From assembly GCA_010909165.1 (NCBI GenBank), contig VJWM01000280.1, positions 1-64,000 of the forward strand: a DNA stretch of 64,000 nucleotides, read 5' to 3'. The notes under the pieces are model-generated. The model saw only the letters and a program-made list of their open reading frames with translations, was not told the DNA's origin and made no database searches. Position 1 is the stretch's first letter; each line of letters starts with the position of its first letter. The translations under genes were made by a program, and so were the position numbers. The DNA is from Anthoceros angustus (lineage: Eukaryota > Plantae > Anthocerotophyta). Shown here one piece after another: positions 27,613-64,000 of the stretch.

Positions 27613-30324
27613 CCTGTGCCAAGTCATTGTGGTGAGACTTGAGCGGAAGTGCAACAGGGGAAGGATTGTGGAGACACCGCCTATAGCTTTGGATATGGTA
27701 GAGCGGCATGGGGTTGAGAAGGGTGGTTCAAGCGGTTTGAGCGGCGTCTTCTTGAGATTAGAGAAAGGAGAATGACGGGGAGAATCGAGAAAGGGAATTT
27801 CAACGGCAAGCAGTTTAGAATCATTGATTTGCAGCAAGCAGGTACAACCGAGTTTCCAAGCAAGAGAAAGCTTTGGAGATCCAAAGGAGAAAAATGTCGA
27901 AAGGAGGCAAGAGTATTTCAAGCAGGAAAAACTCAAGCAAGAGGAAAGCGAAATCAAGAGTGGGAAAGCGCAGCAAACTATTGACAATGTTACACTCCTC
28001 GCTCCACTTCCATCCATGGAAAACCATATAAAGCTGTAAGTTGATTTAATTGTTCCCTTGATTTTGATCGCTAATTTTACTTTAGTAGACTAAGACGGTA
28101 ATGTTTGATTAGGTTCTCAACTTTCGGAAGATGAAGAATTTCTCCAAAGCCCCGGGTTCATCAACTCGGCAAACTATGATAATGTTGGACAAGTTGCCCG
28201 GTTAAACCAAGTGGTCTTGGAAACTATGTCTTCAATCTCTACAATTGTACGATCAATTTTCCAAAATAAGGTGGGAATCTTTTCTAATGAACTTTTCTTT
28301 TGCGTCTATTCGAATCATCTAATTGGTTACAAGCCTAATTTACTTTGTATATGTAGATTTGTAATTTGAATAAGGAGGATCAACTATTCTGGTATTTTCT
28401 CTATTTTCTGTTATTTTGAATTCATGCAATTACGGATATACGAAACTTTGCAAAGATGATATTTCTTTGTTGGTTTTTGTATATCCCGGATCCGCATGAA
28501 TGGTACTTATGTAAGATGTTTCTTGCCAGTTAGCGATTGTGTTGGAATTACTAGGCCTCCACAGATTACAATCTACCATGGTATTTCAGCTGCACTTGCT
28601 ATTCACTTGGTGATCATTCTTTACCCTCTTGTTCTAGTTTTGATTTGGATGGTAAAATGTTTCCATTCATCGCGTTTTTACTCTATATTCACTTGGTTGA
28701 TCCATTCTTTACCCTCCTGTTCTAGTTTTGACTTGGATGGTAAAATGTTTCCATCCATCGATCTATGCTTTCTACTCTATTGTTACAATTTTCCACCTTA
28801 TTCGTAAAAAATTTTACCAATTGAAAAATTCTCTCTCTTCGTTTTACCCTTTTGGCCGAAAAAACCAATGGGCGGCGTCGAGGCCCCACGAGGGCCGACT
28901 TCGGATTCCACGGTGACCTTGAACCTTGACACCTTACGAGGGCTTGTCCAATGTTTATGAATATATGTAAGTCGCATCCCTCATTTATATACCCAAGTTT
29001 TCCTTGGCCCTTGGGAATCTTACGTGGAATTTTGCATCCGAAACCCCTAATTACCATGGGCCAAGGAACAATCATCCTTGGATTTCGTCATCCCTTTTTT
29101 TCCCCTTAAATTCGCCCCACTTCCTTGAGGTTGATTCCGTCCTTGGACTTTGGCCTCACAAATTTTTCCACAAAGTTCTTCTTTCTCGAGCGCCGGACGC
29201 CAAGAGTCCGCTAGCCTACTTCTGCGCCTCGGGGCCGTCTGGTCCTATTGGCGCACTCGGCACACCCGCAAGGCCAAGATGCACTGAGTCCGTCGGCCTA
29301 CCCGCAGTCGAGCCTCCCACTCCCCAATGCGGCGTTCTCTCGGCCCACGGTTTAGGGTTATCGGGCCTACCACTCCCGAGTCGCCCTTCCGCCCTCCCGT
29401 GAGACTTCTCACCGGTGAGTGCACGATGGCGGTGTCGTGCAATCCGACCACATGGCGTGAAGCTTGAGAAACCGCTTTTAATTTTTGAAAGTGTTTCGTG
29501 AAAGGGCCTATGTAAATTAGCCTACTTGTACCAAATATCAAAGGCTATCGATCAAGCTATGTTGGAGCTTGAAATGACAACTTGCATGCAGAGGCGAAGT
29601 CAACCAAGAACAACCTTTAGACTAAACCACATCCTTGTAGGCGGTGAAAACCAAGCGTGGGATGAAAACAATCACTACTATTCAAGTTTTGAAAAGGGTG
29701 GAGACCCCATTAAAAGCGTTGAGCGTTTTTAGAGGACTTAACTTTCTCGAAGCTCTTTTGCCCACCAAAATTTTCAAACCTCCTAGGAGCAAAGATTTGC
29801 ATAGTACTAAATTGCAATCAAGAATGTAGGTCGCTAGAATGAAGGTGGCGAGATAGTCTAAAATCTTATGTGAAACGAGTCATGTCCATGCACACGATGT
29901 TTGATTTAACGTAAGCAAAAATCTTGTCACTAAAGGGCGTGGGGCGGTCTTTTTCCAATCCATGAAGTCCATCGGCGTAAACCTTTAACTTGCATGGTCG
30001 GAGTGTGCATGAGTGTAAGTGTTGGGAATGCGTGTTGGATCTTGACCGTGGAATGCGATGCGGATGTATGGATGGGCGCGGGTCGGATGCATAGGATTCA
30101 AACATTGATGATTAATGGAGGAGTCTCTGGTCACGGCAGCTATATCGACTATGCGACGCGACATACTCCTCACATCATTCTTGGCACCGGGGACAAACAT
30201 TTGACCCCTTGCTTCCGCATAACAAATTTGGCCGTCATAATGCACATCTATTGATACATTTAATTTTACGTAGTGAGAAAAAGTCACGACCATCTGCATG
30301 CTAGTATGTGAGCACACAAATGAG

Positions 30325-31274
30325 CTATTTGATTGAAGGCAAGTTCACACGCAATCTAAGGCTCAATTCGAGCTCTTCCAAACAAAAATTCCCACTTTGC
30401 AAAAACCATGCGGTACTATAACGGATGCATGCGGACGCAAAAATCGGTAAGTGCTCTTGAGCGTACTCACCGCCACATTACATGCGTCGGCAATGCTCTT
30501 GAGAGCTGCAGTTCCCTCGAGATCTTACAGACCATGTATATAACTCGGCGGTGGGGAGCTTGGATATCAATTTTTGTTTTCCGAGGGCACTCACGAAAGA
30601 CAGCTCTACTTTCCTTGCGCATTTCGAGCACGGAACAAAGCAGTCTTGCAAAATCCTTGGGCGGATAGCTTTGGGCCGCGCGGCGGATTTCCTCGGGTCT
30701 GTGGCTCGTCATGCACGGCCCTCATTTCTAGGAGGTCCACCAACTTCCCAACAACCCCTGGTCAAGGCTATAGCTGCAGTACCCAAAGCCTCGTAGATTT
30801 CTTGCATTGACCGAGGAGTCCTTTCTTCTTTACAAGCCACGTACATAGCGGCACATCGTCTCTTCACAACTCCTTTTCTCAAGACCCTCGCCTTCTTGTA
30901 CAAGGAACTTGCCAATACACCGTGTTGTGCACAATTCTCATTCTTCTGCGAGCTCGAAATCCTATCAAAGGCGATATGTCGTGCCGTCATGAGTGGGAAC
31001 CCGTGCATTCGTGTTCCGTGTGGATGCAACCCATTTTTCCTTGCGCTAGTGCGGATGCAAGTGGTTAGGCCAGCATGGTCGAGCAAGTCATCCGTGTCGT
31101 GGGGCGTCCCACACGCTCCTTCTCCTCGTGCTCGGTGTCATTATCGAACTTCCTATATTCCAAGGTTTCGTCGACGTTCTTCTAACACTAGACCGCACCA
31201 CTGCAAAATCGCCTCGGACTGCTGTCCTCATAAATCTCTGTCTTTATCTTGCACTCTAGACATTTCAGCTCCAT
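30325..31274 (-). CDS. TFIIB: Intronless TFIIB-like gene, copy 1 (indels may be sequencing error)
   Basis: Zn ribbon CLEC...CGLVLEER, B-reader ETLEYR.F...ERVG, cyclin repeat 1 AFDRI...ASSLYKKA...AAMYVACKEERTPRSMQEI, repeat 2 PKDFARLLCSVL...VIYMV...SIADACNVAVSTLKSTYRFLRPHASVIVPAWF; stop after NLPSIK; ~950 bp. Confidence 0.88.
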
Positions 31275-31466
31275 ATTCTCGGTCACGAGATAATTAAAAA
31301 GTGGAATGTGTAGCCTTGAAATCGTTAACCCACGAGGGCTTTGGACAATGAGTGACTAAGCACAATGATTGTTTTCAAACAAGAAAGGATTCCACGGTGA
31401 CCTTGAACCTTGACACCTTACGAGGGCTTGTCCAATGTTTATGAATATATGTAAGTCGCATCCCTC

Positions 31467-31475
31467 ATTTATATA
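31467..31475 (-). promoter_or_regulatory. Candidate TATA box of the TFIIB-like gene (repeated in every unit)
   Basis: Minus strand GGGTATATAAATGAGGG, ~195 bp upstream of the ATG at 31274. Confidence 0.55.
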
Positions 31476-32044
31476 CCCAAGTTTTCCTTGGCCCTTGGGA
31501 ATCTTACGTGGAATTTTGCATCCCGAAACCCCTAATTACCATGGGCCAAGGAACAATCATCCTTGGATTTCGTCATCCCCTTTTTTTCCCCCTTAAATTC
31601 CACTTCCTTGAGGTTGATTCCGTCCTTGGACTTTGGCCTCACAAATTTTTCCACAAAGTTCTTCTTTCTCAGGGCGCCAAGAGTCCGCTAGCCTACTTGC
31701 GCCTCGGGGCCGGAGTCTGCCGTCCTATTGGCGCACTCCGGCACACCATGAGGCCAAGATGCCAGTCAGTCACACCCGCGATCGAGCCTCCCACTCCCCA
31801 ATGCGACGTTCTCGCCCCACGGTTTAGGGTTATCGGGCCTACCACTCCCGAGTCGCCGTCCTTCGGCCCTCCCGTGAGACTTCTCACCGGTGAGTGCGAT
31901 GGCATTGTCGTGCAATCCCGACCATCGGTGAAGCTTGAGAAACCGTTTTAATTTTTGAAAGTGTTTCGTAGAAAGGGCCTATGTAAATTAGCCTACTTGT
32001 ACCAAATATCAAAGGCTATCGCGGTCAAGCTATGTTGGAGCTTG

Positions 32045-33600
32045 AAATGACAACTTGCATGCAGAGAAGGCCAACCAACAAGAACAATCCTTAAGAGAAC
32101 AACGATGAAACAATCCTTAAGTTTTGAAACCAAGTGGGATGACAATCACTATTCAGAGTTTTGAAAAGGGAGCAACAGTACTAAAGCGTCAAGAATTTTT
32201 AGAGAACTCTTCTCAAAAGGATTTGCAAAAATTTTTCAAATTTAGTACAAGAATTGCAATAGGTGTGCACAATCTATGTCTATGAAGTGAAATCCACTAA
32301 AGGTAGTCGATGAAGTCATTTTTCCAATCCATGTGGATGCAAACCTTTAACTTTGTGTGCGGATGAAGTGTTATGCGTGGTGACGTCATGGGTGGGCGTA
32401 TGCGCGTGCTGGATGCATAGGATTCCATATTCATTTTAATGGAAACTGACGTTCTTCAATGCGACATACCTCACTCATTCTTGGTCATAAACATTTTATT
32501 ACATTTGGATATTTGACAAAGATAATAAAGTGGAATGTGTAGCCTTGAAATCCTATCAAAGGCTATCGTCAAGCTATGTTGGAGCTTGAAATGACAACTT
32601 GCATGCGAGAGAAGGAAAAGCGAAGTCAACCAAGAACAACCTTTAGACTAAACCACATCCTTGTAGAGGCGGTGAAAACCAAGCGTGGGATGAACAATCA
32701 TCCTTGGATTTCGTCATCCCTTTTTCCCCTTAAATTCGCCCCACTTCCTTGAGGTTGATTCCGTCCTTGGACTTTGGCCTCACAAATACTCTTTTCGAGC
32801 ATTGAACGCTACGCAAAAATGGGCTAATGCTCTTGGCGCATTTTTCCCGCACGTGCACGTCGCGGCTCTTGATATAACAACCCCCAAGGGCCAGTACGAG
32901 TTCTTCATTTTCTGAGACTTTCTTTTACGACTCCAAACATCAACTCCAAAAGTGGTGAAACTTGTAATTCCTCTGCATCCTTTTTCCTTTTAGCTTGAAA
33001 TCCTATCAAAAGCGAGTGCAGAACACCCCTGCATTTCGGATCACAACCTCTTTCCTTTGTGGATGCGGTTGCCAGTGGTCGTGAGTCATCTCTTTTCTAG
33101 GTCCACCAACTTCAACAACGTCACACTCATTATCGAATCCATTGACCGTCTTCTTCAAGACCACTCGCCATGTCACAACTCCTTTCTCGCCTTGCTTGTA
33201 TGCAACTTGCAAGTGTTGTGCCAATTCTCATTCTTCTCAGCTAAATCATCGCGGATAATGTAGCATGAGTGGGAACCCGTGCATTCGTGTTCCTGTGGAT
33301 GCAACCCATTTTCCTTTCAACGATGCGTGTTCTGTGAGCAATCATCCTGTACTCGTCACGCTCCTTCTCCTCGTGCTCTGTCATTATCGAACTTCCTATA
33401 TTCAAGGTTTTCGTCGTTCTTCTAACACTAGACCGCAGTGCAAAATCATCTCACGTCCTCATAAATCTCTTTATCTTGCACTCTAGACATTTTTCCATAT
33501 TCTGTCACGAGATAATTAAAAAGTGGAATGTGTAGCCTTGAAATCGTTAACCCACGAGGGCTTTGGACAATGGTGACTAAGCACAATGATTGTTTTTCAA
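32045..33600. other. Scrambled or degraded mosaic of array-unit fragments, including a decayed TFIIB copy at ~33000-33500
   Basis: Short array pieces joined out of order (e.g. ~32540 GAAATCCTATCAAAGGCTATCG; ~32695 GGATGAACAATCATCCTTGG) between low-identity tracts. Confidence 0.7.
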
Positions 33601-34109
33601 CGATTCCACAGTGACCTTGAACCTTGACACCTTACGAGGGCTTGTCCAATGTTTATGAATATATGTAAGTCGCATCCTCATTTATATACCCAAGTTTTCC
33701 TTGGCCCTTGGGAATCTTCGTGGAATTTTGCATCCCGAAACCCCTAATTACCATGGGCCAAGGAACAATCATCCTTGGATTTCGTCATCCCTTTTTCCCC
33801 TTAAATTCGCCCCACTTCCTTGAGGTTGATTCCGTCCTTGGACTTTGGCCTCACAAATTTTTCCACAAAGTTCTTCTTTCTCGAGCAGGGGCCAAGAGTC
33901 CGCTAGCCTACTGCGCCTCGGGTGAGTCTGCCGTCCTATTGGCGCACTCGGCACACCCATAAGGCCAAGATGCGAGTCCGTCGGCCTACCGCGATCGAGC
34001 CTCCCACTCCCCAATGCGACGTTCTCTCGGCCCACGGTTTAGGGTTATCGGGCCTACCACTCCCGAGTCGTCCTTTCGGCCCTCCCGTGAGACTTCTCAC
34101 CGGTGAGTG

Positions 34110-35555
34110 CGATGTTGTCGTGCAATCCCCCACCTGGCGGTGAAGCTTGAGAAACCGTTTTAATTTTTGAAAGTGTTTCGTAGAAAGGGCCTATGTAAAT
34201 TAGCCTACTTGTACCAAATATCAAAGGCTATCGTCAAGCTATGTTGGAGCTTGAAATGACAACTTGCATGCGAGAGAAGGAAAAGCGAAGTCAACCAAGA
34301 ACAACCTTTAGACTAAACCACATCCTTGTAGAGGCGGTGAAAACCAAGCGTGGGATGAAAACAATCACTACTATTCAAGTTTTGAAAAGGGTGGAGACCC
34401 CATTAAAAGCGTTGAGCGTTTTTAGAGGACTTAACTTTCTCAAGGAGAAGCTCTTTTGCCCACCAAAATTTTCAAACCTCCTAGGAGCAAAGATTTGCAT
34501 AGTACTAAATTGCAATCAAGAATGTAGGTCGCTAGAATGAAGGTGGCGGATAGTCTAAAATCTTATGTGAAACGAGTCATGTCCATGCACGATGGCGGTG
34601 TCGTGCAATCCCGACCACATGGTGAAGCTTGAGAAACCGTTTTAATTTTTGAAAGTGTTTCGTGAAAGGGCCTATGTAAATTAGCCTACTTGTACCAAAT
34701 ATCAAAGGCTATCGCGATCAAGCTATGTTGGAGCTTGAAATGACAACTTGCATGCGAGAAGGAAAAGCGAAGTCAACCAAGAACAACCTTTAGACTAAAC
34801 CACATCCTTGTAGAGGCGGTGAAAACCAAGCGTGGGATGAAAACAATCACTACTATTCAAGTTTTGAAAAGGGTGGAGACCCCATTAAAAGCGTTGAGCG
34901 TTTTTAGAGGACTTAACTTTCTCAAGGAGAAGCTCTTTTGCCCACCAAAATTTTCAAACCTCCTAGGAGCAAAGATTTGCATAGTACTAAATTGCAATCA
35001 AGAATGTAGGTCGCTAGAATGAAGGTGGCGGATAGTCTAAAATCTTATGTGAAACGAGTCATGTCCATGCACGATGGCGGTCGTGCAATCCGACCACCAT
35101 GGCGGTGAAGCTTGAGAAACCGTTTTAATTTTTGAAAGTGTTTCGTAGAAAGGGCCTATGTAAATTAGCCTACTTGTACCAAATATCAAAGGCTATCGCG
35201 TCAAGCTATGTTGGAGCTTGAAATGACAACTTGCATGCGAGAGAAGGAAAAGCGAAGTCAACCAAGAACAACCTTTAGACTAAACCACATCCTTGTAGAG
35301 GCGGTGAAAACCAAGCGTGGGATGAAAACAATCACTACTATTCAAGTTTTGAAAAGGGTGGAGACCCCATTAAAAGCGTTGAGCGTTTTTAGAGGACTTA
35401 ACTTTCTCAAGGAGAAGCTCTTTTGCCCACCAAAATTTTCAAACCTCCTAGGAGCAAAGATTTGCATAGTACTAAATTGCAATCAAGAATGTAGGTCGCT
35501 AGAATGAAGGTGGCGATAGTCTAAAATCTTATGTGAAGCGAGTCATGTCCATGCA
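34110..35555. repeat. ~485-bp sub-unit triplication within one array unit
   Basis: GATG..GTCGTGCAATCC ... GAGTCATGTCCATGCAC three times (starts ~34110, 34591, 35073). Confidence 0.9.
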
Positions 35556-35993
35556 CACGATGTTTGATTTAACGTAAGCAAAAATCTTGTCACTAAAGGG
35601 CGTGGGGCGACGAAGGTCTTTTCAATCCATGAAGTCCATCGGCGGCAAACCTTTAACTTTGCATGGTCGGGAGTGTGCATGAGTGTAAGTGTTGGGAATG
35701 CGTGTTGTGATCTTGGCCGTGGAATGCGATGCGGATGTATGGATGGCGCGGGTCGGATGCATAGGATTCAAACATTGATTAATGGAGGAGTCTCGGTCAC
35801 GGCAGCTATGTCGACTATGTGCGACGCGACATACTCCTCACATCATTCTTGGCACCGGGACAAACATTTGACCCCTTGCTTCGAAGCATAACAAATTGGC
35901 GTCATAATGCACGATCTATTGATACATTGAATTTTACGTAGTGAGAAAAAGTCACGACCATGCATGCTAGTATGTGAGCACAAGCACACTGAG

Positions 35994-36948
35994 CTATTTG
36001 ATTGAAGGCAAGTTCACAAAAATCTAAGGCTCAATTCGAGCTCTTCCAAACAAAAATTCCCACTTTGCAAAAACCATGCGGTACTATAACGGATGCATGC
36101 GAAAATCGGTAAGTGCTCTTGAGCGTACTCACGCCACATTACATGCGTCGGCAATGCTCTTGAGCGGTGCCACAGTTCCCTCGAGATCTTCTGGACCATG
36201 TATATAACTCCGCGGTGTGGAGCTTGGATATCGAATTTTGTTTTCCGAGGGCACTCCACGGCTTGAAAGACAGCTCTCGCACTTTCCTTTCGAGCACAGA
36301 ACAAAAGCAGTCTTGCAAAATCCTTGGGCGGATAGCTTTGGGCCGCGCCGCGGATTTCCTCGGGTCTGCGGCTCGTCATGCACGGCCCTCATTTCTAGGA
36401 GGTCCACCAACTTCCCTGGTCAAGGCTATAGCTGCAGTACCCAAAGCCTCGTAGATTTCTTGCATTGACCGAGGAGTCCTTTCTTCTTTACAAGCCACGT
36501 ACATAGCGGCTGACACATACGTCTCTTCACAACTCCCTTTTCTCAAGACCCTCGCCTTCTTGTACAAGGAACTTGCCAATACTGCGTGTTGTGCACAATT
36601 CTCATTCTTCTGCGAGCTCGAAATCCTATCAAAGGCGGATATCAGTGCCGTCATGAGTGGGAACCCGTGCATTCGTGTTCCGCGGTGTGGATGCAACCCA
36701 TTTTCCTTTCTTTGTAGTGCGGATGCAAGTGGTTAGGCCAGCATGGTCGAGCAAGTCATCCGTGTATGCGTGGGGCGTCCCACACGCTCCTTCTCCTCGT
36801 GCTCGGTGTCATTATCGAACTTCCTATATTCCAAGGTTTCGTCGTCGGCGTTCTTCTAACACTAGACCGCACCACTGCAAAATCATCTCGGACACTGCGT
36901 CCTCATAAATCTCATCTTTATCTTGCACTCTAGACATTTCAGCTCCAT
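35994..36948 (-). CDS. TFIIB: TFIIB-like gene copy
   Basis: Same motifs as 30325-31274; ATG at 36948, stop at 35994-35996. Confidence 0.85.
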
Positions 36949-37719
36949 ATTCTCTGTCACGAGATAATTAAAAAGTGGAATGTGTAGCCTTGAAATCGTT
37001 AACCCACGAGGGCTTTGGACAATGAGTGACTAAGCACAATGATTGTTTTTCAAGCGATAAAGGATTCCACGGTGACCTTGAACCTTGACACCTTACGAGG
37101 GCTTGTCCAATGTTTATGAATATATGTAAGTCGCATCCTCATTTATATACCCAAGTTTTCCTTGGCCCTTGGGAATCTTACGTGGAATTTTGCATCCCGA
37201 AACCCCTAATTACCATGGGCCAAGGAACAATCATCCTTGGATTTCGTCATCCCTTTTTTCCCCCTTAAATTCTTACTTCCTTGAGGTTGATTCCGTCCTT
37301 GGACTTTGGCCTCACAAATTTTTCCACAAAGTTCTTCTTTCTCGAGCGCCGGACGCCAAGAGTCCGCCTATGCGCCTCGGAGTCTGCCGTCCTATTGGCG
37401 CACTCCGGCACACCCAGGCCAAGATGCACAGTCCGTCGGCCTACCACGATCGAGCCTCCCACTCCCCAATGCGGCGTTCTCTCGGTTTAGGGTTATCGGG
37501 CCTACCACTCCCGAGTCGTCCTTCGGCCCTCCGTGAGACTTCTCACCGGTGAGTGCACGATGGCGGTGTCGTGCAATCCCGACCACATCGGTGAAGCTTG
37601 AGAAACCGTTTTAATTTTTGAAAGTGTTTCGTAGAAAGGGCCTATGTAAATTAGCCTACTTGTACCAAATATCAAAGGCTATCGCGGTCAAGCTATGTTG
37701 GAGCTTGAAATGACAACTT

Positions 37720-38567
37720 GCATGCGGACGCAAAAATCGGTAAGTGCTCTTGGCGTACTCACGCCACATTACATGCGTCGGCAATGCTCTTGGCGGTACA
37801 GTTCCCTCGAGATCTTCTGGACCATGTATATAACTCCGTGATGTGGGGAGCTTGGATATCAATTTTGTTTTCCGAGGGCACTCACGGCTTGAAAGACAGC
37901 TCCTTTCCTTGCGCATTTCGAGCACAGAACAAAAGCAGTCTTGCAAAATCCTTGGGCGGATAGCTTTGGGCCGCGCCGCGGATTTCCTCGGGTCTTGTGA
38001 CTCGTCATGCACGGCCCTCATTTCTAGGAGGTCCACCAACTTCCCAACAACCTGGTCAAGGCTATAGCTGCAGTACCCAAAGCCTCGTAGATTTCTTGCA
38101 TTGACCGAGTCCTTTCTTCTTTACAAGCCACGTACATAGCGGCAGCCACATCGTCTCTTCACAACTCCCTTTTCTCAAGACCCTCGCCTTCTTGTACAAG
38201 GAACTTGCCAATACTGCGTGTTGTGCACAATTCTCATTCTTTCTGCGAGCTCGAAATCCTATCAAAGGCGGATATCAGTCGTCATGAGTGGGAACCCGTG
38301 CATTCGTGTTCCGGTGTGGATGCAACCCATTTTCCTTTGCTGTAGTGCGGATGCAAGTGGTTAGGCCCGGCATGGTCGAGCAAGTCATCCGTAATGTGGG
38401 GCGTCCCACGCTCCTTCTCCTCGTGCCGGTGTCATTATCGAACTTCCTATATTCCAAGGTTTCGTCGTCGGCGTTCTTCTAACACTAGACCGCACCACCG
38501 TCATCTCCGGACTGCTGTCCTCATAAATCTCTGTCTTTATCTTGCACTCTAGACATTTCGACTCCAT
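37720..38567 (-). pseudogene. TFIIB: TFIIB-like copy lacking its last ~35 codons
   Basis: ATG at 38567 (MESKCLECK). A deletion junction CTTGCATGCG|GACGCAAAAATC at ~37725 removes ~850 bp of the unit, including the stop. Confidence 0.82.
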
Positions 38568-40118
38568 ATTCTCCTCACGAGATAATTAAAAAGTGGAATG
38601 TGTAGCCTTGAAATCGTTAACCCACGAGGGCTTTGGACAATGAGTGACTAAGCACAATGATTGTTTTTCAAGCGATAAAGGATTCCACGGTGACCTTGAA
38701 CCTTGACACCTTACGAGGGCTTGTCCAATGTTTATGAATATATGTAAGTCGCATCCCTCATTTATATACCCAAGTTTTCCTTGGCCCTTGGGAATCTTAC
38801 GTGGAATTTTGCATCCGAAACCCCTAATTACCATGGGCCAAGGAACAATCATCCTTGGATTTCGTCATCCCTTTTTCCCCCTTAAATTCTTACTTCCTTG
38901 AGGTTGATTAGTCCTTGGACTTTGGCCTCACAAATTTTTCCACAAAGTTCTTCTTTCTCGAGCAGGGACGCCAAGAGTCCGCTAGCCTACTTGCGCCCTC
39001 GGGGCCGCCGAGTCTGCCGTCCTATTGGCGCACTCACACATGAGGCCAAGATGCCGAGTCCGTCGGCCTACCCGCATCGAGCCTCCCACTCCCCAATTGG
39101 CGTTCTCTCGACGGTTTAGGGTTATCGGGCCTACCACTCCCGAGTCGCCGTCCTTCGGCCCTCCCGTGAGACTTCTCACCGGTGAGTGCCGCGATGGCGG
39201 TATCGTGCAATCCCGACCACAGCTGGCTGGTGAAGCTTGAGAAACCGTTTTAATTTTTGAAAGTGTTTCGTAGAAAGGGCCTATGTAAATTAGCCTACTT
39301 GTACCAAATATCAAAGGCTATCCTTGATCAAGCTATGTTGGAGCTTGAAATGACAACTTACTTGCATGCGAGAAGGAGCAAGTCAACCAAGAACAACCTT
39401 TAGACTAAACCACATCCTTGTAGAGGCGGTGAAAACCAAGCGTGGGATGAAAACAATCACTACTATTCAAGTTTTGAAAAGGGTGGAGACCCCATTAAAA
39501 GCGTTGAGCGTTTTTAGAGGACTTAACTTTCTACGAAGGAAGCTCTTTTGCCCACCAAAATTTTCAAACCTCCTAGGAGCAAAGATTTGCATAGTACTAA
39601 ATTGCAATCAAGAATGTAGGTCGCTAGAATGAAGGTGAGATAGTCTAAAATCTTATGTGAAACGAGTCATGTCCATGCACACGATGTTTGATTTAACGTA
39701 AGCAAAAATCTTGTCACTAAAGGACGTGGAACGAAGGTCTTTTCCAATCCATGAAGTCCATCGGCGCAAACCTTTAACTTTGCATGGTCGGGAGTGTGCA
39801 TGAGTGTAAGTGTTGGGAATGCGTGTTGTGATGCTGGCCGTGGAATGCGATGCGGATGTATGGATGGCGCGGGTCGGATGCATAGGATTCAAACATTGTG
39901 ATTAATGGAGGAGTCTCCGGTCACGGCAGCTATGTCGACTATGCGACGCGACATACTCCTCACATCATTCTTGGCACCGGGACAAACATTTGACCCCTTG
40001 CTTCAAGCATAACAAAATTTGGCCGTCATAATGCACCTATTGATACATTTAATTTTACGTAGTGAGAAAAAGTCACGACCATCTGCATGCTAGTATGTGA
40101 GCTGAAGCACACGGTGAG

Positions 40119-52399: not shown

Positions 52400-53040
52400 T
52401 TTCGTTGAGGAGCTGTCCTGGAGGATGCCTGCTGATAGTTTCACGTTTGTTTGCCTCCTGAATGCATGCTGGCTTGGGTGACCTACAGGGGAGGGAGCCC
52501 CATTTTCAGCAACAAGAAATAGGTCTAGAAGCTGATTTGGTTGTTGGTACCAGTGTGGTGGGCATGTGCAGAATGTGGTAGCTTAGAGGATTGTTGCAGG
52601 TGTTGGACAGACTGCCAGAAACTAGTTTGGTGACGTGGAATACCATGATCATAGGATTTGTTCAGCCAGGGCTTGGTGAAGAAGCTTGGACTCTTTATGC
52701 ACGCTTCCTGTGGCATGCAGACACGCTGGACTGGTGGATGAGGGTCAGCAGTATTTTGAACGCATGGTGCAGGAGCATGGCGGGATCTCATCTGGGGTTT
52801 ATCACTGCGCTTGCATGGATAACATCCTTGGGCGAGCCAGGGCGTCTGGATGAGGCAGGGAAGTTGTTGTACTCCATGCCCTTTGAGAATGATGTTGTGA
52901 GGTGGAAAGCCTTGCTGAATGCGTGCAAAAGCCATGGAGATCCTGAGCGTGAGGGTCGATGCTTTGAGCAACTTATAAAACTTGAACCTAAAATGCGTGC
53001 ATATATGCTGGAAATGTGTACAGAGATCTGGCATGTGGAG
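52400..53040 (+). pseudogene. Captured fragment of a PLS/E-class PPR gene
   Basis: PADSFTFVCLLNAC, GLEADLVVGTSVVGM...CGSLED, VLDRLPETSLVTWNTMIIGFVQPGLGEEA, LGEPGRLDEAGKLLYSMPFENDVVRWKALLNACKSHGD...LIKLEP. Internal motifs are missing. Confidence 0.85.
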
Positions 53041-53384
53041 GATGTAGAGGGCTATTTTGCACCTCACCTATTTTGCTCTCGCATCATCGAGCGAAGGGAC
53101 TAGATATTGTATGGCGTGGCGGAGTATGTTATCCAAGGAGATCGGAAATTTACATCTTGGCGAGATACTGGAGGGTGAGTCTCTCATCTGGGCCTTCCCT
53201 TCACTCCATATTTGATGTGTCACCCAGTGTTGTTGGCGTTGCCATTCATCATGAGTCATCTCACCGCCCAACCCCTTCCGTGTGCTTGGCTAGACTTTTC
53301 CTGTCCATTGTGTGGCCTAAATTTCATCTGGATTCTTCCTCCTAACGGTGACTTATAGTTCTCCCCACAGCGAACTTGCGGTGT

Positions 53385-55575
53385 GGATTCTCGATTCTTG
53401 GGCGTGTTGTCGGGGTGATGGTACAGTGTTGGAGATCACGAAGATTTATATTCTGATGTTTCGAGCAACCTCGGTCTCACAAGGATACTACAAGCTTGAC
53501 CATGCATGCGACTTACATTTGTGTTTCTTGTAGCGGCTTGCATGCACCTCCGCTGGATGTTAGAATGCCATTTATTACATTCTAGAACTTTGCAAAGAGT
53601 GTTGGTCAATGTTCTCATCGGTCACCTCTACCCACTACAATATGGGTAGAAAACTCACTCTGATTGGCCCCGGAACTTTCTGGTGAGGCTTATCTATTTT
53701 GCCTCCTCACTGTAGGTCATGTGCTTTTGTTTTGCAAATATGTCGTGGCTTCTTGCTAACTCCCAAGATGCCAAACAGTGCTACCAAACATGGCTTCTAT
53801 ATCATATATAATTGCTACGCACAATGTTTGTGGAGTTGTTGAAAGTATTCTCCACAGTGTTGAAAGCAAGGTTGGTGTTTGTAGTGATAAGTCAAGAAGG
53901 TGGATGGTGCGGATGTTACATTGCCGTCTACGTGTGGAAATCGTGATTTCGCATTCTAACTGATGATCTTTTGGGTCCTGCCAACATTACATCCAACTCA
54001 CCCATGGACTGTGTTGAAGCCTTGAGTCAAACAAAGAAGGTTGATGACAAGGGATTGTTTTGTTTCGAGGTAGGTGGCCCTCCATGGTCTAGTATGTAAT
54101 CATGTATGTTCATGCTTCTTATGTCTTTTCTCCTCATGCAGGTTCCTCAAGGAGAGTATAGGCTTTCTTTTCTTTGGATGGAGAGGAAAGAGCTATGGGT
54201 GTCTTTTTTGCCACTGTCTTGGATGTGTCATCAATGCACCGATTGAATATTTTGTTCACAGTATAAGTGATCGAAGATCTTGCGTTATGTCTTATTTTGT
54301 CCATATCTTGCGTTTAGGGTTCATCAGTTTTGTCGTTGATAGGCCCAAGTAAGCATCTCAGCCTGTGAAGTGCAAGTGAATCTGACGTGTGGTATGTCTC
54401 TTACTCCTTCAGAAGACACATTCTTGGAAGCAGAACCTAGACTATCATTTGTGGACCTCGGTGGTTTTATATTTGACTGGATTCTCGATTCTTGGGCGTG
54501 TTGTCGGGGGGTGATGGTACAGTGTTGGAGATGAAGATTTATTCTTGATGTTTCGAGCAACCTCGGTCTCACAAGGATACTACAAGCTTGACCATGCATG
54601 CGCCTTGTGTTTCTTGTAGCTTGCATGCACCTCCTATCGGATGTTAGAATGCCATTTATTACATTCTAGAACTTTAGCAAAGAGTGTTGGTCAATGTTCT
54701 CATCAGTCACCCACTACACAATATGGAGAAAACTCACTCTGATTCGGCCCCTTGCAGAACTTTCGGTGAGGCTTATCTATTTTGCCTCCTCACCTTAGGT
54801 CATGTGCTTTTGTTTTGCAAATATGTCGTGGCTTCTTGCTAACTCCCAAGATGCCAACAGTGCTACCAAACATGGCTTCTATATCATATATAATTGCTAC
54901 GCTACAATGTTTGTGGAGTTGTTGAAAGTATTCTCCCGGTGTTGAAAGCAAGGTTGGTGTTTGTAGTGATAAGTCAAGAAGGTGGATGGTGCGGATGTTA
55001 CTGTTGCCGTCTCTGTGGAAATCGAGATTTGCGCATTCTAACTGTTGATCTTTTGGGTCCTGCCAACATTACATCCAACTCACCCATGGACTGTGTTGAA
55101 GCCTTGAGTCAAACAAAGAAGGTTGATGACAAGGGATTGTTTTGTTTCGAGGTAGGTGGCCCTCCATGGTCTAGTATGTAATCATGTATGTTCATGCTTC
55201 TTATGTCTTTTCTCACATCTGTAGCAGGTTCCTCAAGGAGAGTATAGGCTTCTGTTTCTTTGGATGGAGAGGAAAGAGCTATGGTGTGTCTTTTTTTGCC
55301 ACTGTCTTGGATGTGTCTCAATGCACCGATTCTGAATATTTTGTTCACACAGTATTAAGTGCGATCAAGATCTTGCGTTATGTCTTATTTTGTCCATATC
55401 TTTGCAGTTTAGGGTTCATCAGATTTTGTCGTTGATAGGCCCAAGTAAGCATCTCTGGCAGAAGTGCAAGGCTGGATGCAGCACGTGTGGGCTGTCTCTT
55501 ACTCCTTCAAAGACACATTCTTCAGAACCAGCTAGACTATCATTTGTGGACAGACTGGTGGTTTTATATTTGACG
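53385..55575. repeat. ~1.1 kb tandem duplication inside the CACTA element
   Basis: ATTCTCGATTCTTGGGCGTGTTGTCGGGG at ~53387 and 54481; the two copies are colinear to ...GGTTTTATATTTGAC. Confidence 0.92.
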
Positions 55576-55650
55576 GATTATTTCTGGAAAATGCATTCTT
55601 GAGGTACATTTCTTGTTGGAAAATGCATACTTGAGGTACATTTCTTGTTT
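55576..55650. repeat. ~39-bp tandem duplication
   Basis: GGAAAATGCAT.CTTGAGGTACATTTCTTGTT twice. Confidence 0.8.
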
Positions 55651-55865
55651 CTTGATCAATACAAGTGCTAAGGGATATCTTGAAGGCTCATACCGCAAAT
55701 CTGAGTTCATGGTAGGAGGGAGAGGTTGCACATTGGTGACTTCGGTCTAAATATAAGAAGCACCAAGTCCCTACATACCTCCATGGAATTTCGAATTGAG
55801 TGACCTTTAAGGTGTGGCAACATTCGACAAGAAAGTCGAGTTCGATTGTTTCTTTTATTTTGTGT

Positions 55866-56087
55866 CCGAGGTGTTGAGGCGAGATTATTATACTATCACT
55901 TCTCGCCTGGATATGTTCACACTATTGAGGAGCGGTTTGATCACTTTGGATATGGCGGAGTCCTTGATGATTTGGCCCGAGGTGTTGAGGCGAGATTATT
56001 ATACTATCACTTCTCGCCTGTCGATATGTTCATACTATTGAGGCGGTTTGATCACTTTGGATATGGCGGAGTCCTTGATGACTTGGC
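55866..56087. repeat. ~110-bp tandem repeat x2
   Basis: CCGAGGTGTTGAGGCGAGATTATTATACTATCACTTCTCGCCTG...GTCCTTGATGA.TTGG twice. Confidence 0.88.
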
Positions 56088-56224
56088 TGAGATAATTAAA
56101 AAGTGGAATTGACCTGGAGCATCCTGTTATGATCCCATTTTTAGTAAAGTATTTTTATTGAGTAATTATTGTTTTATTATCCAAATGGGGAATAATAAAG
56201 CGGGGAATGGAAGCGATGCATCTG

Positions 56225-56350
56225 AGCAGCGGGCAGGAGCAGTGAAGCAGGAGCAGCGGGCGAAGCAGCGGGCGAAGCAGCGGGCGAGAGCAGCGGGCGA
56301 GCAGCGGGCGAGCAGCGGGCGAAGCAGCGGGCGAAGCAGCGGGCGAGCGT
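56225..56350. repeat. (GCAGCGGGCGA) subterminal minisatellite
   Basis: About 8 near-tandem GCAGCGGGCGA units with 1-3 nt spacers. Confidence 0.9.
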
Positions 56351-57086
56351 TGGGCGATAATGATGAAGCAGGGGCGGTGGGCAGGGGCGACCAGCGTAGC
56401 AGTGAAGCAGGAGCAGTGAAGCAGGAGCGAGGTTAGGGGTATGGGTTAAAGATGAGTTAGGAAAAACAACGGTTCCTAAATAGCAAAAGCGAAAACAACG
56501 GCGTTTAGTTATTTTCAGCTAGGTTCGGGTGGCCGTTGTTTTTTCAACTTTTCCGTTGTTTTTTACAAACATGCGTTGTTTTTACACGTTGTTTTGGATC
56601 CTCAAATGTAGTAGTGATTCCTGAGCTCTTCCAAACAAAAATTCCCACTTTGCAAAAACCATGCCGGTACTATAACGGATGCATGCGGACGCAAAATCTG
56701 GTAAGTGCTCTTGAGCGTACTCACCGCCACATTACATGCGTCGGCAATGCTCTTGAGCGAGCTGCAGTTCCCTCGAGATCTTCTGACCATGTATATAACT
56801 CCGGTGACCGTGGAATGCGATGCGGATGTATGGATGGGCGCGGGTCGGATGCATAGGATTCAAACATTGACGATTAATGGAGGAGTCTCGGTCACGGCTA
56901 TGTCGACTATGTGCGACATACTCCTCACATCATTCTTGGCACCCGGGACAAACATTTGACCCCTTGCTTCAAAGCATAACAAATTTGGCCGTCATAATGC
57001 ACGATCTATTGATACATTTAATTTTACGTAGTGAGAAAAAGTCACCGACCATGCGCATGCTAGTATGTGAGCACAGCACACTTGAG

Positions 57087-58056
57087 CTATTTGATTGAAG
57101 GCAAGTTCACAGCATAATCTAAGGCTCAATTCACGAGCTCTTCCAAACAAAAATTCCCACTTTGCAAAAACCATGCCGGTACTATAACGGATGCATGCGG
57201 ACGCAAAATCGGTAAGTGCTCTTGGCGTACTCACCGCCACATTACATGCGTCGGCAATGCTCTTGAGCGAGCTGCAGTTCCCTCGAGATCTTCTGACCAT
57301 GTATATAACTCCGGTGACCGTGGGGAGCTTGGATATCAATTTTTGTTTTCCGAGGGCACTCACGGCTTGAAAGACAGCTCGCACTTTCCTTGCGCATTTC
57401 GAGCACAGAACAAAGCAGTCTTGCAAAATCCTTGGGCGGATAGCTTTGGGCCGGATTTCCTCGGGTCTTGTGGCTCGTCATGCACGGCCCTCATTTCTAG
57501 GAGGTCCACCAACTTCCCAACAACCCCTGGTCAAGGCTATAGCTGCAGTACCCAAAGCCTCGTAGATTTCTTGCATTGACCGAGGAGTCCTTTCTTCTTT
57601 ACAAGCCACGTACATAGCAGCCACATACGTCTCTTCACAACTCCCTTTTCTCAAGACCCTCGCCTTCTTGTACAAGGAACTTGCCAATACTGCGTGTTGT
57701 GCACAATTCTCATTCTTTCTGCGAGCTCGAAATCCTATCAAAGCGGATATCAGTGCCGTCATGAGTGGGAACCCGTGCATTCGTGTTCGCGGTGTGGATG
57801 CAACCCATTTTTCCTTTCAGAAAGTGGATGCAAGTGGTTAGGCCAAGATGGTCGAGCAAGTCATCCGTGTCGTGGGGCGTCCCACACGCTCCTTCTCCTC
57901 GTGCTCGGTGTCATTATCGAACTTCCTATATTCCAAGGTTTCGTCGATACGACGTTCTTCTAACACTAGACCGCACCCTGTGCAAATGCTGTCTCCAGAC
58001 CTGCTGTCCTCATAAATCTCTGTCTTTATCTTGCACTCTAGACATTTCAGCTCCAT
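57087..58056 (-). CDS. TFIIB: TFIIB-like gene copy
   Basis: ORF 57838-58056 MELKCLECKIKTEIYEDSRSGDSICTGCGLVLEERRIDETLEYRKFDNDTEHEEKERVGRP plus downstream cyclin-fold blocks. Confidence 0.9.
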
Positions 58057-60920
58057 ATTCTCGGCTGTCCTGAGATAATTAAAAAAGTGGAATGTGTAGC
58101 CTTGAAATCGTTAACCCACGAGGGCTTTGGACAATGAGTGACTAAGCACAATGATTGTTTTTCAAACAAGAAAGGATTCCATGTGACCTTGAACCTTGAC
58201 ACCTTACGAGGGCTTGTCCAATGTTTATGAATATATGTAAGTCGCATCCTCATTTATATACCCAAGTTTTCCTTGGCCCTTGGGAATCTTACGTGGAATT
58301 TTGCATCCCGAAACCCCTAATTACCATGGGCCAAGGAACAATCATCCTTGGATTTCGTCATCCCTTTTTTCCCCTTAAATTCGCCCCACTTCCTTCGAGG
58401 TTGATTCCGTCCTTGGACTTTGGCCTCACAAATTTTTCCACAAAGTTCTTCTTTCTCGAGCCGGACGCCAAGAGTCCGCTAGCCTACTTGCGCCCTCGGG
58501 ACGCCGGAGTCTGCCGTCCTATTGGCGCACTCCGGCACACCCGCAAGGCCAAGATGCACGGAGTCCGGCCGGCCTACCCGCACGATCGAGCCTCCCACTC
58601 CCCAATGCGACGTTCTCTCGGCCCACGGTTTAGGGTTATCGGGCCTACCACTCCCGAGTCGCCGTCCTTTCGGCCCTCCGTGAGACTTCTCACCGGTGAG
58701 TGCACGATGGCGGTCGTGCAATCCCGACCAGAATCGGTGAAGCTTGAGAAACCGTTTTAATTTTTGAAAGTGTTTCGTAGAAAGGGCCTATGTAAATTAG
58801 CCTACTTGTACCAAATATCAAAGGCTATCGCGGTCAAGCTATGTTGGAGCTTGAAATGACAACTTGCATGCAGAGAAGGAAAATCAAGTCAACCAAGAAC
58901 AACCTTTAGACTAAACCACATCCTTGTAGAGGCGGTGAAAACCAAGCGTGGGATGAAAACAATCACTACTATTCAAGTTTTGAAAAGGGTGGAGACCCCA
59001 TTAAAAGCGTTGAGCGTTTTTAGAGGACTTAACTTTCTCTCAAGGAGAAGCTCTTTTGCCCACCAAAATTTTCAAACCTCCTAGGAGCAAAGATTTGCAT
59101 AGTACTAAATTGCAATCAAGAATGTAGGTCGCTAGAATGAAGGTGGCGATAGTCTAAAATCTTATGTGAAACGAGTCATGTCCATGCACACGATGTTTGA
59201 TTTAACGTAAGCAAAAATCTTGTCACTAAAGGACGTGGACGACGAAGGTCTTTTTCAATCCATGAAGTCCATCGGCAAACCTTTAACTTTGCATGGTCGA
59301 GTGTGCATGAGTGTAAGTGTTGGGAATGCGTGTTGACGATGCCGACCGTGGAATGCGATGCGGATGTATGGATGGGCGGGTCGGATGCATAGGATTCAAA
59401 CATTGACGATTAATGGAGGAGTCTCGGTCACGGCAGCTATGTCGACTATGTGCGACGCGACATACTCCTCACATCATTCTTGGCACCCGGGACAAACATT
59501 TGACCCCTTGCTTGACAAGCATAACAAATTGGCCGTCATAATGCACACGTCTATTGATACATTTAATTTTACGTAGTGAGAAAAAGTCACCGACCATGCG
59601 CATGCTAGTATGTGAGCACAAGCACAGTGAGCTATTTGATTGAAGGCAAGTTCACAACAAGATAATCTAAGGCTCAATTCTGAGCTCTTCCAAACAAAAA
59701 TTCCCACTTTGCAAAAACCATGCCGGTACTATAACGGATGCATGCGGACGCAAAAATCTTGTCACTAAAGGGCGTGGACGGCGAAGGTCTTTTTCAATCC
59801 ATGAAGTCCATCGGCAAACCTTTAACTTTGCATGGTCGGGAGTGTGCATGAGTGTAAGTGTTGGGAATGCGTGTTGGCGATCTTGGCCGTGGAATGCGAT
59901 GCGGATGTATGGATGGGCGGGTCGGATGCATAGGATTCAAACATTGAGTTAATGGAGGAGTCTCGGTCACGGCAGCTATGTCGACTATGTGCGACGCGAC
60001 ATACTCCTCACATCATTCTTGGCACCGGGACAAACATTTGACCCCTTGCTTGACAAGCATAACAAATTTGGCCGTCATAATGCACAGTCTATTGATACAT
60101 TTAATTTTACGTAGTGAGAAAAAGTCACGACCATCTTTGCATGCTAGTATGTGAGCACAAGCACAGTGAGCTATTTGATTGAAGGCAAGTTCACGGTAGC
60201 ATAATCTAAGGCTCAATTCGAGCTCTTCCAAACAAAAATTCCCACTTTGCAAAAACCATGCCGGTACTATAACGGATGCATGCGGACGCAAAAATCGGTA
60301 AGTGCTCTTGAGCGTTTTTAGAGGACTTAACTTTCTCAAGGAGAAGCTCTTTTGCCCACCAAAATTTTCAAACCTCCTAGGAGCAAAGATTTGCATAGTA
60401 CTAAATTGCAATCAAGAATGTAGGTCGCTAGAATGAAGGTGGCGATAGTCTAAAATCTTATGTGAAACGAGTCATGTCCATGCACACGATGTTTGATTTA
60501 ACGTAAGCAAAAATCTTGTCACTAAAGGACGTGGACGAAGGTCTTTTTCAATCCATGAAGTCCATCGGCAAACCTTTAACTTTGCATGGTCGGGAGTGTG
60601 CATGAGTGTAAGTGTTGGGAATGCGTGTTGGATGCCGACCGTGGAATGCGATGCGGATGTATGGATGGGCGGGTCGGATGCATAGGATTCAAACATTGAC
60701 GATTAATGGAGGAGTCTCGGTCACGGCTATGTCGACTATGTGCGACGCGACATACTCCTCACATCATTCTTGGCACCGGGACAAACATTTGACCCCTTGC
60801 TTGACAAGCATAACAAATTGGCGTCATAATGCACACAGTCTATTGATACATTGAATTTTACGTAGTGAGAAAAAGTCACCGACCATGCGCATGCTAGTAT
60901 GTGAGCACAAGCACAGTGAG

Positions 60921-61985
60921 CTATTTGATTGAAGGCAAGTTCACGGTAGCATAATCTAAGGCTCAATTCGAGCTCTTCCAAACAAAAATTCCCACTTTGC
61001 AAAAACCATGCCGGTACTATAACGGATGCATGCGGACGCAAAAATCGGTAAGTGCTCTTGGCGTACTCACCGCCACATTACATGCGTCGGCAATGCTCTT
61101 GAGCGAGCTGCAGTTCCCTCGAGATCTTCTGGACCATGTATATAACTCCGGTGACCGATCGTGGGGAGCTTGGATATCAATTTTGTTTTCCGAGGGCACT
61201 CACGGCTTGAAAGAGCTCTGACTTTCCTTGCGCATTTCGAGCTGGAACAAAGCAGTCTTGCAAAATCCTTGGGCGGATAGCTTTGACGCGACGCGGATTT
61301 CCTCGTGCTGCTCGTCATGCACGGCCCTCATTTCTAGGAGGTCCACCAACTTCCCAACAACCCCTGGTCAAGGCTATAGCTGCAGTACCCAAAGCCTCGT
61401 AGATTTCTTGCATTGACCGAGGAGTCCTTTCTTCTTTACAAGCCACGTACATAGCAGCAGCCACATCGTCTCTTCACAACTCCCTTTTCTCAAGACCCTC
61501 GCCTTCTTGTACAAGGAACTTGCCAATACCGCGTGTTGTGCACAATTCTCATTCTTTCTGCGAGCTCAAATCCTATCAAAGGCGGATATCGTCACGTCAT
61601 GAGTGGGAACCCGTGCATTCGTGTTCCGCAGGTGTGGATGCAACCCATTTTTCCTTTGCGAGCTCAAATCCTATCAAAGGCGGATATCGGTGGTCATGAG
61701 TGGGAACCCGTGCATTCGTGTTCGCAGTGTGGATGCAACCCATTTTTCCTTGCGCTGTAGTGCGGATGCAAGTGGTTAGGCCAGCATGGTCGAGCAAGTC
61801 ATCCGTGTCGTGGACGTCCCACACGCTCCTTCTCCTCGTGCTCGGTGTCATTATCGAACTTCCTATATTCCAAGGTTTCGTCGACACGACGTTCTTCTAA
61901 CACTAGACCGCACTGCAAAATCATCTCGGACACTGTCCTCATAAATCTCTGTCTTTATCTTGCACTCTAGACATTTCAGCTCCAT
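60921..61985 (-). pseudogene. TFIIB: TFIIB-like copy with an internal ~95-bp duplication
   Basis: GCGAGCTCAAATCCTATCAAAGGCGGATATC...CAACCCATTTTTCCTT repeated at ~61560 and ~61657. Confidence 0.82.
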
Positions 61986-63554
61986 ATTCTCTGTCCCGAG
62001 ATAATTAAAAAGTGGAATGTGTAGCCTTGAAATCGTTAACCCACGAGGGCTTTGGACAATGAGTGACTAAGCACAATGATTGTTTTTCAAACAAGAAAGG
62101 ATTCCAGTGACCTTGAACCTTGACACCTTACGAGGGGCTTGTCCAATGTTTATGAATATATGTAAGTCGCATCCCTCATTTATATACCCAAGTTTTCCTT
62201 GGCCCTTGGGAATCTTACGTGGAATTTTGCATCCCGAAACCCCCTAATTACCATGGGCCAAGGAACAATCATCCTTGGATTTCGTCATCCCCTTTTTTTC
62301 CCCTTAAATTCGCCCCACTTCCTTCGAGGTTGATTCCGTCCTTGGACTTTGGCCTCACAAATTTTTCCACAAAGTTCTTCTTTCTCAGAACGCCGGGACG
62401 CCAAGAGTCCGCTAGCCTACTTGCGCCTCGGGACGCCGGGAGTCTGCCGTCCTATTGGCGCACTCCCGGCACACCCGCAAGGCCAAGATGCACGGAGTCC
62501 GTCGGCCTACCCGCACGATCGAGCCTCCCACTCCCCAATGCGACGTTCTCTCGGCCCACGGTTTAGGGTTATCGGGCCTACCACTCCCGAGTCGCCGTCC
62601 TTTCGGCCCTCCGTGAGACTTCTCACCGGTGAGTGCACGATGGCATCGTGCAATCCCGACCAGAATCGGTGAAGCTTGAGAAACCGTTTTAATTTTTGAA
62701 AGTGTTTCGTAGAAAGGGCCTATGTAAATTAGCCTACTTGTACCAAATATCAAAGGCTATCGCGGTCAAGCTATGTTGGAGCTTGAAATGACAACTTGCA
62801 TGCGAGAAGGAAAACTGAAGTCAACCAAGAACAACCTTTAGACTAAACCACATCCTTGTAGGCGGTGAAAACCAAGCGTGGGATGAAAACAATCACTACT
62901 ATTCAAGTTTTGAAAAGGGTGGAGACCCCATTAAAAGCGTTGAGCGTTTTTAGAGGACTTAACTTTCTCGAAGGAGAAGCTCTTTTGCCCACCAAAATTT
63001 TCAAACCTCCTAGGAGCAAAGATTTGCATAGTACTAAATTGCAATCAAGAATGTAGGTCGCTAGAATGAAGGTGGCGAGATAGTCTAAAATCTTATGTGA
63101 AACGAGTCATGTCCATGCACACGATGTTTGATTTAACGTAAGCAAAAATCTTGTCACTAAAGGGCGTGGACGAAGGTCTTTTTCCAATCCATGAAGTCCA
63201 TCGGCAAACCTTTAACTTTGCATGGTCGGGAGTGTGCATGAGTGTAAGTGTTGGGAATGCGTGTTGATGACCGTGGAATGCGATGCGGATGTATGGATGG
63301 GCGCGGGTCGGATGCATAGGATTCAAACATTGGATTAATGGAGGAGTCTCGGTCACGGCAGCTATGTCGACTATGTGCGACGCGACATACTCCTCACATC
63401 ATTCTTGGCACCCGGGACAAACATTTGACCCCTTGCTTCAAGCATAACAAATTGGCCGTCATAATGCACATCTATTGATACATTTAATTTTACGTAGTGA
63501 GAAAAAGTCACGACCATGCGCATGCTAGTATGTGAGCTCAAGCACACAGCTGAG

Positions 63555-64000
63555 CTATTTGATTGAAGGCAAGTTCACAACAGATAATCTAAGGCTCAAT
63601 TCGAGCTCTTCCAAACAAAAATTCCCACTTTGCAAAAACCATGCCGGTACTATAACGGATGCATGCGGACGCAAAAATCGGTAAGTGCTCTTGAGCGTAC
63701 TCACCGCCACATTACATCGTCGGCAATGCTCTTGAGCGAGCTGCAGTTCCCTCGAGATCTTCTGGACCATGTATATAACTCCGGTGACCGATCGTGGGAG
63801 CTTGGATATCGAATTTTGTTTTCCGAGGGCACTCACGGCTTGAAAGACAGCTCGCACTTCCTTGCGCATTTCGAGCTGGAACAAAAGCAGTCTTTGCAAA
63901 ATCCTTGGGCCGGATAGCTTTGGACGCGCACGGCGGATTTCCTCGGGTGCGCGGCTCGTCATGCACGGCCCTCATTTCTAGGAGGTCCACCAACTTCCCA
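63555..64000 (-). CDS. TFIIB: 3' half of a TFIIB-like copy (truncated by window end)
   Basis: ORF 63555-63962 ...VIYMVQKISRELQL...NVAVSTLKSTYRFLRPHASVIVPAWFLQSGNFCLEEL...NLPSIK*. Confidence 0.85.

Follow-up and report, generated by a model that had tools for sequence, protein, structure and literature searches.

Human D4Z4, at 4q35/10q26, is a tandem array in which each 3.3-kb repeat embeds an intronless DUX4 retrogene (PMC5849414, PMC3616921). A related arrangement is described here for the hornwort Anthoceros angustus, in a stretch of 64,000 nucleotides (nt) of assembly GCA_010909165.1 (contig VJWM01000280.1, positions 1 to 64,000 of the forward strand; hereafter the window), where the evidence supports a repeat unit that holds a divergent, intronless gene of the TFIIB family with a conserved TATA box and has been amplified head-to-tail. 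General initiation factors, to which TFIIB belongs, are normally present in one or few copies. The TFIIB family has grown more than once in plants, where a number of the resulting paralogues act in reproduction (PMC7865254, PMC3044737, PMC4036515); the plant subfamilies of this kind comprise TFIIB, BRF, Rrn7/MEE12, BRP1, and BRP5 (PMC7865254). In the literature searched, which covered TFIIB in liverworts (Marchantia included), in hornworts, and in relation to sex chromosomes, no TFIIB-type macrosatellite is described.

The reading favored here, to which we assign a probability of roughly 0.55, is that of a gene-bearing macrosatellite that arose from an intron-free TFIIB paralogue, evolved under coding constraint, was then amplified, and is now eroding at its edge, the breaks in its reading frames being mostly assembly noise. 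A separate and more tentative proposition, held at somewhat below even odds, is that the genome contains copies with a genuinely open frame.

Identity of the encoded protein

The gene lies on the minus strand in every unit and comprises approximately 323 intron-free codons that are colinear with full-length plant TFIIB, with, in order, a zinc ribbon, a probable reader/linker, a probable first cyclin repeat, and a second cyclin repeat. The zinc ribbon, which retains its four cysteine ligands, is recognized by Pfam PF08271 (Zn_Ribbon_TF) on 57841-58110 (minus strand) with E=2.2e-14 and 53.2 bits (cut-off 29), covering profile positions 2-43 of 43; in the other copies, the ribbon is scrambled. 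In a local blastp search against 150 retrieved proteins, the N-terminal piece aligns to plant TFIIB residues 6-73 at 43-46% identity, a match that includes the conserved reader motif with Tyr replacing Trp. For the first cyclin repeat, the pieces at 57481-57816 and 40389-40859 reach 22.5 and 21.7 bits, respectively, on PF00382, just under its cut-off of 23.6. The second of these pieces also gives phmmer matches in PDB to the cores of archaeal TFB and human TFIIB (E=0.005-0.1, with 0.005 for archaeal TFB), an in-frame piece matches TFIIB residues 67-178 in the local blastp search, and copy 1 carries a Pfam TFIIB repeat at 30709-31086 (minus strand). The second cyclin repeat is represented by 63558-63971 (minus strand), a piece that has no Pfam match and aligns in the local search to residues 190-298 of 305-aa plant TFIIBs with 28-31% identity (E=4e-9 to 9e-9). 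When a 305-aa TFIIB is used as a tblastn query, residues 3-298 are covered across 58056-57162 (895 nt) without an intron-sized gap, and the pieces that match TFIIB lie together in some 950 nt of unbroken sequence. The complete reading spans from the start of the ribbon to a stop about 30 codons past the second repeat.

Predicted structures agree with this assignment, and since both AlphaFold alignments were seeded with TFIIBs, the support from the models is not fully independent. The helical cores of the two core-piece models have pLDDT values of 77-93. In the model of the first repeat (40389-40859), values are 81-93 for residues 41-90 and 77-89 for residues 91-120, and the top PDB matches are TFIIB chains, weakly scored at E of about 0.1. 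The model of the second repeat superimposes on the human TFIIB core (1c9b_A) with an rmsd of 2.0 A over 88 columns and a probability of 1.00. A B-factor of the BRF, BRP1, or Rrn7 type was also considered and fits poorly, as a long N- or C-terminal extension is absent and the protein is TFIIB-sized. A first-pass annotation, made from the letters alone, had proposed a divergent intronless TFIIB, and the ribbon match, the blastp match of the second repeat, and the intron-free colinear stretch bear this identification out.

The protein shares 25-45% identity with known plant TFIIB-like paralogues. A full HMMER scan with the 72-residue N-terminus covered 15 billion public proteins through 1.84 billion cluster representatives and returned 451 matches, the best at 56 bits and the bulk being ordinary plant TFIIB N-termini. 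No member of this particular family is present in the collection scanned. The best-aligning full-length proteins are divergent angiosperm proteins annotated as TFIIB or TFIIB-2-like (Corchorus, Turnera, Malus, and Pistacia), a prasinophyte TFIIB, and a fern protein. To judge from these comparisons, the gene branched off the plant TFIIB lineage and has evolved fast. Additionally, apple and pear contain several divergent TFIIB-2-like genes with neighboring locus tags (e.g., FF1_045183, 045185, and 045186), so small tandem clusters of fast-evolving TFIIB paralogues occur in flowering plants too.

Architecture of the array

The first-pass annotation had described a head-to-tail array of units of about 2.5 kb that extends beyond the window, and both parts of this description hold. 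A blastn search of the window with the unit 30325-32810 returns plus/plus matches only, at 88-93% identity. Copies start at 35994, 40119, 57087, and 60921, another starting at 63555 is interrupted where the window ends, the copy from 37719 lacks the first 101 unit positions, partial copies lie at 28903 and 33213, and a fragment matches at 22877-23107. As all copies are direct repeats, no hairpin can form. Mapping against a reference unit (38680-41168, 2489 nt) gives a period of approximately 2.48 kb and resolves nine units of this nominal length in one orientation (plus), from 28903 to 64000, where the last unit runs off the window end. With nine in-register, head-to-tail units of at least 1 kb, the locus is a macrosatellite. 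The units are 91-95.5% identical to one another in the present assembly, and the copies are thus less alike than the near-identity first claimed for them.

Unit lengths vary through deletions and subrepeat expansions. From left to right, a complete unit occupies 28903-31378, and 1.1 kb of mostly foreign or divergent sequence (32097-33212) then stands in place of most of one unit. The unit at 33602-37054 carries a spacer subrepeat of 489 bp in triplicate (three tandem plus-strand copies of 482-489 bp at 34116-35556, with 97-98.5% mutual identity), the unit at 37062-38672 has an 861-nt deletion corresponding to reference positions 680-1541, and the reference unit is complete. The following unit is split between positions 1484 and 1485 by a non-array insert of 13,976 bp (42647-56622), on the right side of which a unit starting at unit position 1156 occupies 56805-58165. 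The unit at 58174-62090 contains more subrepeat expansions and a 96-nt duplication within its gene, and the one at 62099-64000 leaves the window. Between units, variability peaks in the G+C-rich spacer, at unit positions 301-600 (e.g., 38980-39280), and not in the gene; this part of the unit reaches 67% G+C and 12 CpG per 100 nt, and half of its columns differ between copies.

The array was first thought to begin at 28904, a boundary that does not stand. The fragment at 22877-23097 (minus strand), which consists of the 5' end of the gene and its 5' leader, reaches exactly to the final position of the unit, whose first position falls at 28903. The two continue the unit exactly; therefore, the AT-rich 5.8 kb between them (23098-28902), located exactly at a unit junction, is an insert, and the array began further left. 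A retroelement-like repeat cuts the left side of this leftmost remnant. These exact-position inserts, together with the 861-nt deletion, the 96-nt duplication, and the subrepeat expansions, are not explicable by noise; the large structural differences are thus certainly those of separate genomic copies and not of one inflated unit, and this end of the array is degenerating.

Five copies of the gene cover the full length in colinear order, all on the minus strand: copy 1 at 30325-31274, copy 2 at 35994-36948, copy 3 at 40119-41059 (with a 157-aa in-frame piece at 40389-40859), copy 4 at 57087-58056 (the sole copy with an unbroken zinc ribbon), and copy 5 at 60921-61985 (in which the 96-nt internal tandem duplication is in frame). 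Two further copies on the same strand are incomplete. The one at 37719-38567 is 3'-truncated, having lost about 100 nt, and with them its last ~33 codons, to the 861-nt unit deletion; the one at 63555-64000 is cut by the window end and contributes a 138-aa in-frame piece corresponding to the second cyclin repeat. Fragments, likewise on the minus strand, comprise a degenerate 5' part at 33213-33498, with 82-88% identity to other units, and the two portions of the copy split by the 14-kb insert about 45 nt before its stop, namely a 3' gene fragment at 56623-56813 and the last 45 nt at 42603-42646. This inventory agrees with the one initially given, five full-length copies, one 3'-truncated, one cut by the window end, and several fragments. 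The positions given there are also correct, with the qualification that the listed starts are stop-codon ends because the gene is on the minus strand.

In six copies, a TATA box, TATATAAAT, precedes the ATG by 198-204 nt, in accordance with a motif noted earlier at about 195 bp; in the degenerate copy at 33498 the distance is 190 nt. In copy 1 it occupies 31467-31475 (minus strand), 201 nt from the ATG; further sites have low coordinates of 28983, 33680, 37141, 38760, 41249, 58252, and 62178. Rfam and tRNA scans detected no RNA gene in the unit, and its plus-strand open reading frames (ORFs) gave no family match.

Several other features lie in or beside the array. The 14-kb insert contains a frame-broken remnant of a PLS/E-type pentatricopeptide-repeat (PPR) gene at 52299-53100 (plus strand; Pfam PPR, E=3e-8), whose motifs carry on over some 800 nt in spite of four or more changes of frame, and a 1.1-kb direct tandem duplication at 53384-55579 (91.7% identity, 20 mismatches, 55 gap openings). 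Inside the 5.8-kb insert, roughly three tandem copies of an AT-rich sequence, each about 514 bp long and 86-87% identical, occupy 26047-27613. To the left of the array lies a gypsy-type element in which all pol domains are broken mid-domain; it includes a stop-free piece at 8234-8596 that matches C-5 cytosine DNA methylase (minus strand; E=3e-6, profile positions 49-98 of 324), with a protease piece (9210-10463) on one side and pieces of RNase H (6399-6818) and integrase (5337-5783) on the other.

Reading frames and probable indel noise

None of the seven copies contains a continuous ORF of ~300-350 codons, and the longest stop-free piece is 161 aa. The gene had been called complete, which is correct for colinear coverage and not for an open frame. 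For comparison, a 323-residue reading was tiled from five in-frame pieces and aligned to each copy by a local frameshift-aware dynamic programme. Against this reading, each copy has 9-16 frameshifts (9, 16, 11, 15, and 16 in copies 1 to 5) and only 0-1 in-frame stops (none in copy 1), and 264-303 of the 323 residues are identical when frameshifts are allowed.

The same excess of indels extends beyond the gene. Self-alignments of at least 300 nt give 1229 mismatches versus 2293 gap openings in 70.6 kb for the array, and 218 versus 337 in 7.0 kb for unrelated repeats, i.e., the retroelement repeats, the AT-rich tandem repeat, and the 1.1-kb duplication. All repeat families of the window have 1.5-2.7 times as many gap openings as mismatches (e.g., 3614-4164 vs 12446-13016, 1216-3485 vs 20247-22472, and 53384-54483 vs 54478-55579), and single-base gaps account for 63% of gaps. 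From pairwise gap openings, the indel density per copy is estimated at 0.6-1.6%, which predicts 6-16 indels per 0.97-kb ORF, equal to the observed load. The gypsy pol and the PPR remnant are likewise cut mid-domain, into pieces of less than 150 aa. Because indels outnumber mismatches both in the array and in unrelated repeats, and stops are few, whereas natural decay would produce the opposite pattern, most frame breaks are probably long-read-type assembly indel errors and not mutations. Under such an error pattern, the coding status is not readable here, and decay is neither proved nor disproved; the copies may be more alike and more intact than the assembly suggests. More generally, repeat regions of this assembly seem to carry ~1% indel errors, making calls of open frames or pseudogenes in them unsafe.

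Differences between copies are strongly clustered. Variability per 100-nt bin correlates with G+C (rho 0.44) and with CpG (0.38), and variable columns show a weak enrichment next to CpG (odds ratio 1.7), an association that is suggestive of context-dependent errors and not decisive. A count by codon position and by synonymous versus non-synonymous change, made on gap-free columns, is uninformative, nearly all apparent substitutions lying in short scrambled runs and the isolated ones being too few to test for selection.

Origin of the array and alternative explanations

Plant TFIIB-like paralogue genes contain introns. The gene in this array is colinear with an mRNA over TFIIB residues 3-298, on 895 nt, without any intron, as in a retrogene, and the loss of introns is most simply attributed to retroposition. 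The retroposed paralogue proposed in the first-pass annotation is suggested by its lack of introns and not by a poly(A) tract, as no A-rich or poly(A) tract follows the stop within 700 nt. Such a remnant, like a target-site duplication, may have been lost in the course of amplification.

In the proposed sequence of events, a lineage-specific TFIIB paralogue would have lost its introns, retroposition being the simplest route, and would then have evolved for a long period as a coding gene, moving far from canonical TFIIB. Coding constraint before amplification is suggested because the four-cysteine ribbon, the reader/linker, and both cyclin repeats appear to be kept in order at only 25-45% identity. 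Head-to-tail amplification, together with the TATA promoter and a 1.5-kb spacer, would have followed, probably by unequal crossing-over, and would be recent because the copies barely differ by substitution. Unequal exchange would continue to add subrepeats to the spacer and to remove others. The edge of the array would now be eroding, the window representing its left, decaying side with foreign inserts and truncated units. If the gene is open and transcribed, its product would be a variant TFIIB whose cyclin core docks on TBP-DNA and whose ribbon and reader reach RNA polymerase II; such a variant could direct an alternative (e.g., germline) initiation programme or compete with the canonical factor.

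The strongest competitor to this account is a dead satellite, i.e., a TFIIB retro-pseudogene that already carried frameshifts when it was caught in a tandem repeat, so that the TATA box and domain order would be relics; we regard it as a serious possibility, distinctly less probable than the gene-bearing macrosatellite. Several observations weigh on its side or against the favored reading. Besides the lack of any open copy among the seven, the foreign inserts and truncations, and the missing poly(A) tract, a majority consensus of the seven copies still retains 11 frameshifts, different copies are shifted at the same codons, and most copies lose the frame at four junctions in the tiled reading. 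The consensus does not average the breaks away; the errors must therefore be systematic in certain sequence contexts, unless some of the frameshifts are real and common to the copies. The gene is conserved no better than the spacer, variability following G+C content instead. Pairwise identities spread from 92 to 98.5%, and shared variants mostly join physically adjacent units, with 59% of character pairs in conflict, so that part of the variation must be real and mixed with noise. Among the 1.84 billion representatives, the N-terminus is matched at no more than 56% identity; a word search made with the 157-aa piece in public proteins gave no match, a result of little weight because full-length relatives fall outside its length window. 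Public protein collections thus appear to give no sign of a predicted or assembled open copy. Against a dead satellite, natural decay that had produced 9-16 frameshifts should have left substitutions in roughly tenfold excess along with several nonsense codons, whereas only 0-1 stops are found, and the same indel excess in unrelated repeats means that the frameshifts are not readable as mutations. All three domains still score in spite of the low identity to known paralogues, which points to divergence as a coding gene and not as a pseudogene.

Two other explanations account for the data far less well. One or a few real copies might have been inflated into an array by the assembler, as the window is noisy and repeats are where assemblers fail; the 861-nt deletion, the 96-nt duplication, the tripled 489-bp subrepeats, and the 14-kb and 5.8-kb inserts go beyond what noise can create, leaving this the most improbable of the alternatives. 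It is only marginally less improbable that the gene is cargo of a mobile element (a Helitron, a long terminal repeat (LTR) element, or similar) whose copies were piled up in tandem. Retroelement sequence does surround and interrupt the array, but the unit has no transposon protein domain, its ORFs on both strands gave TFIIB matches only, it has no terminal repeats and no RNA gene, and its copies abut in strict register and in a single orientation. The gene-bearing macrosatellite consequently remains the preferred reading.

Comparison with known systems

Plant TFIIB1/2, BRP1, pBRP2, BRP4, and BRP5/PTF2 are single or few-copy genes, and none has been reported as a macrosatellite unit. Among bryophytes, the gene ORF162 on the male (V) chromosome of Marchantia polymorpha was reportedly found by Okada et al. 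in 2001 to be multicopy and embedded in repeats; it is similar in being a bryophyte gene within repeats and differs in its protein family, and for the present locus sex linkage is only an analogy. In TSPY-type arrays of animal sex chromosomes, a protein-coding gene forms the head-to-tail unit and is often germline-expressed, the units being about 20 kb long and containing introns. The hornwort array resembles them in having a coding gene as a long head-to-tail unit, whereas the TSPY units are larger and intron-bearing compared with the 2.48-kb intronless unit here. The likeness to sex-chromosome amplicons is an analogy only.

The closest known arrangement is that of D4Z4 and DUX4, which likewise consists of a kilobase-sized tandem unit with an intronless, retrogene-derived transcription-factor gene. 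The two differ in that DUX4 is a double-homeobox, sequence-specific factor in a 3.3-kb mammalian repeat, while the hornwort unit would encode a putative general initiation factor. By analogy with this system, epigenetic silencing would affect most copies of the TFIIB array and would restrict expression to the germline or early embryo. An extreme form, in which many units are open, nearly identical, and transcribed at a restricted stage (gametangia or spores), would provide tens to hundreds of variant TFIIB gene copies that could act as parallel initiation machinery or, in the manner of ampliconic germline genes of animals, as a dosage weapon in genomic conflict, and is considered unlikely. Were the copies found to be dead, the locus would plainly exemplify a satellite that originated from a retrogene. 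Were they found to be open and expressed, they would allow a direct test of whether paralogues of the basal machinery are recruited into stage-specific programmes or genomic conflict, and the array would represent a plant counterpart of the DUX4/D4Z4 arrangement.

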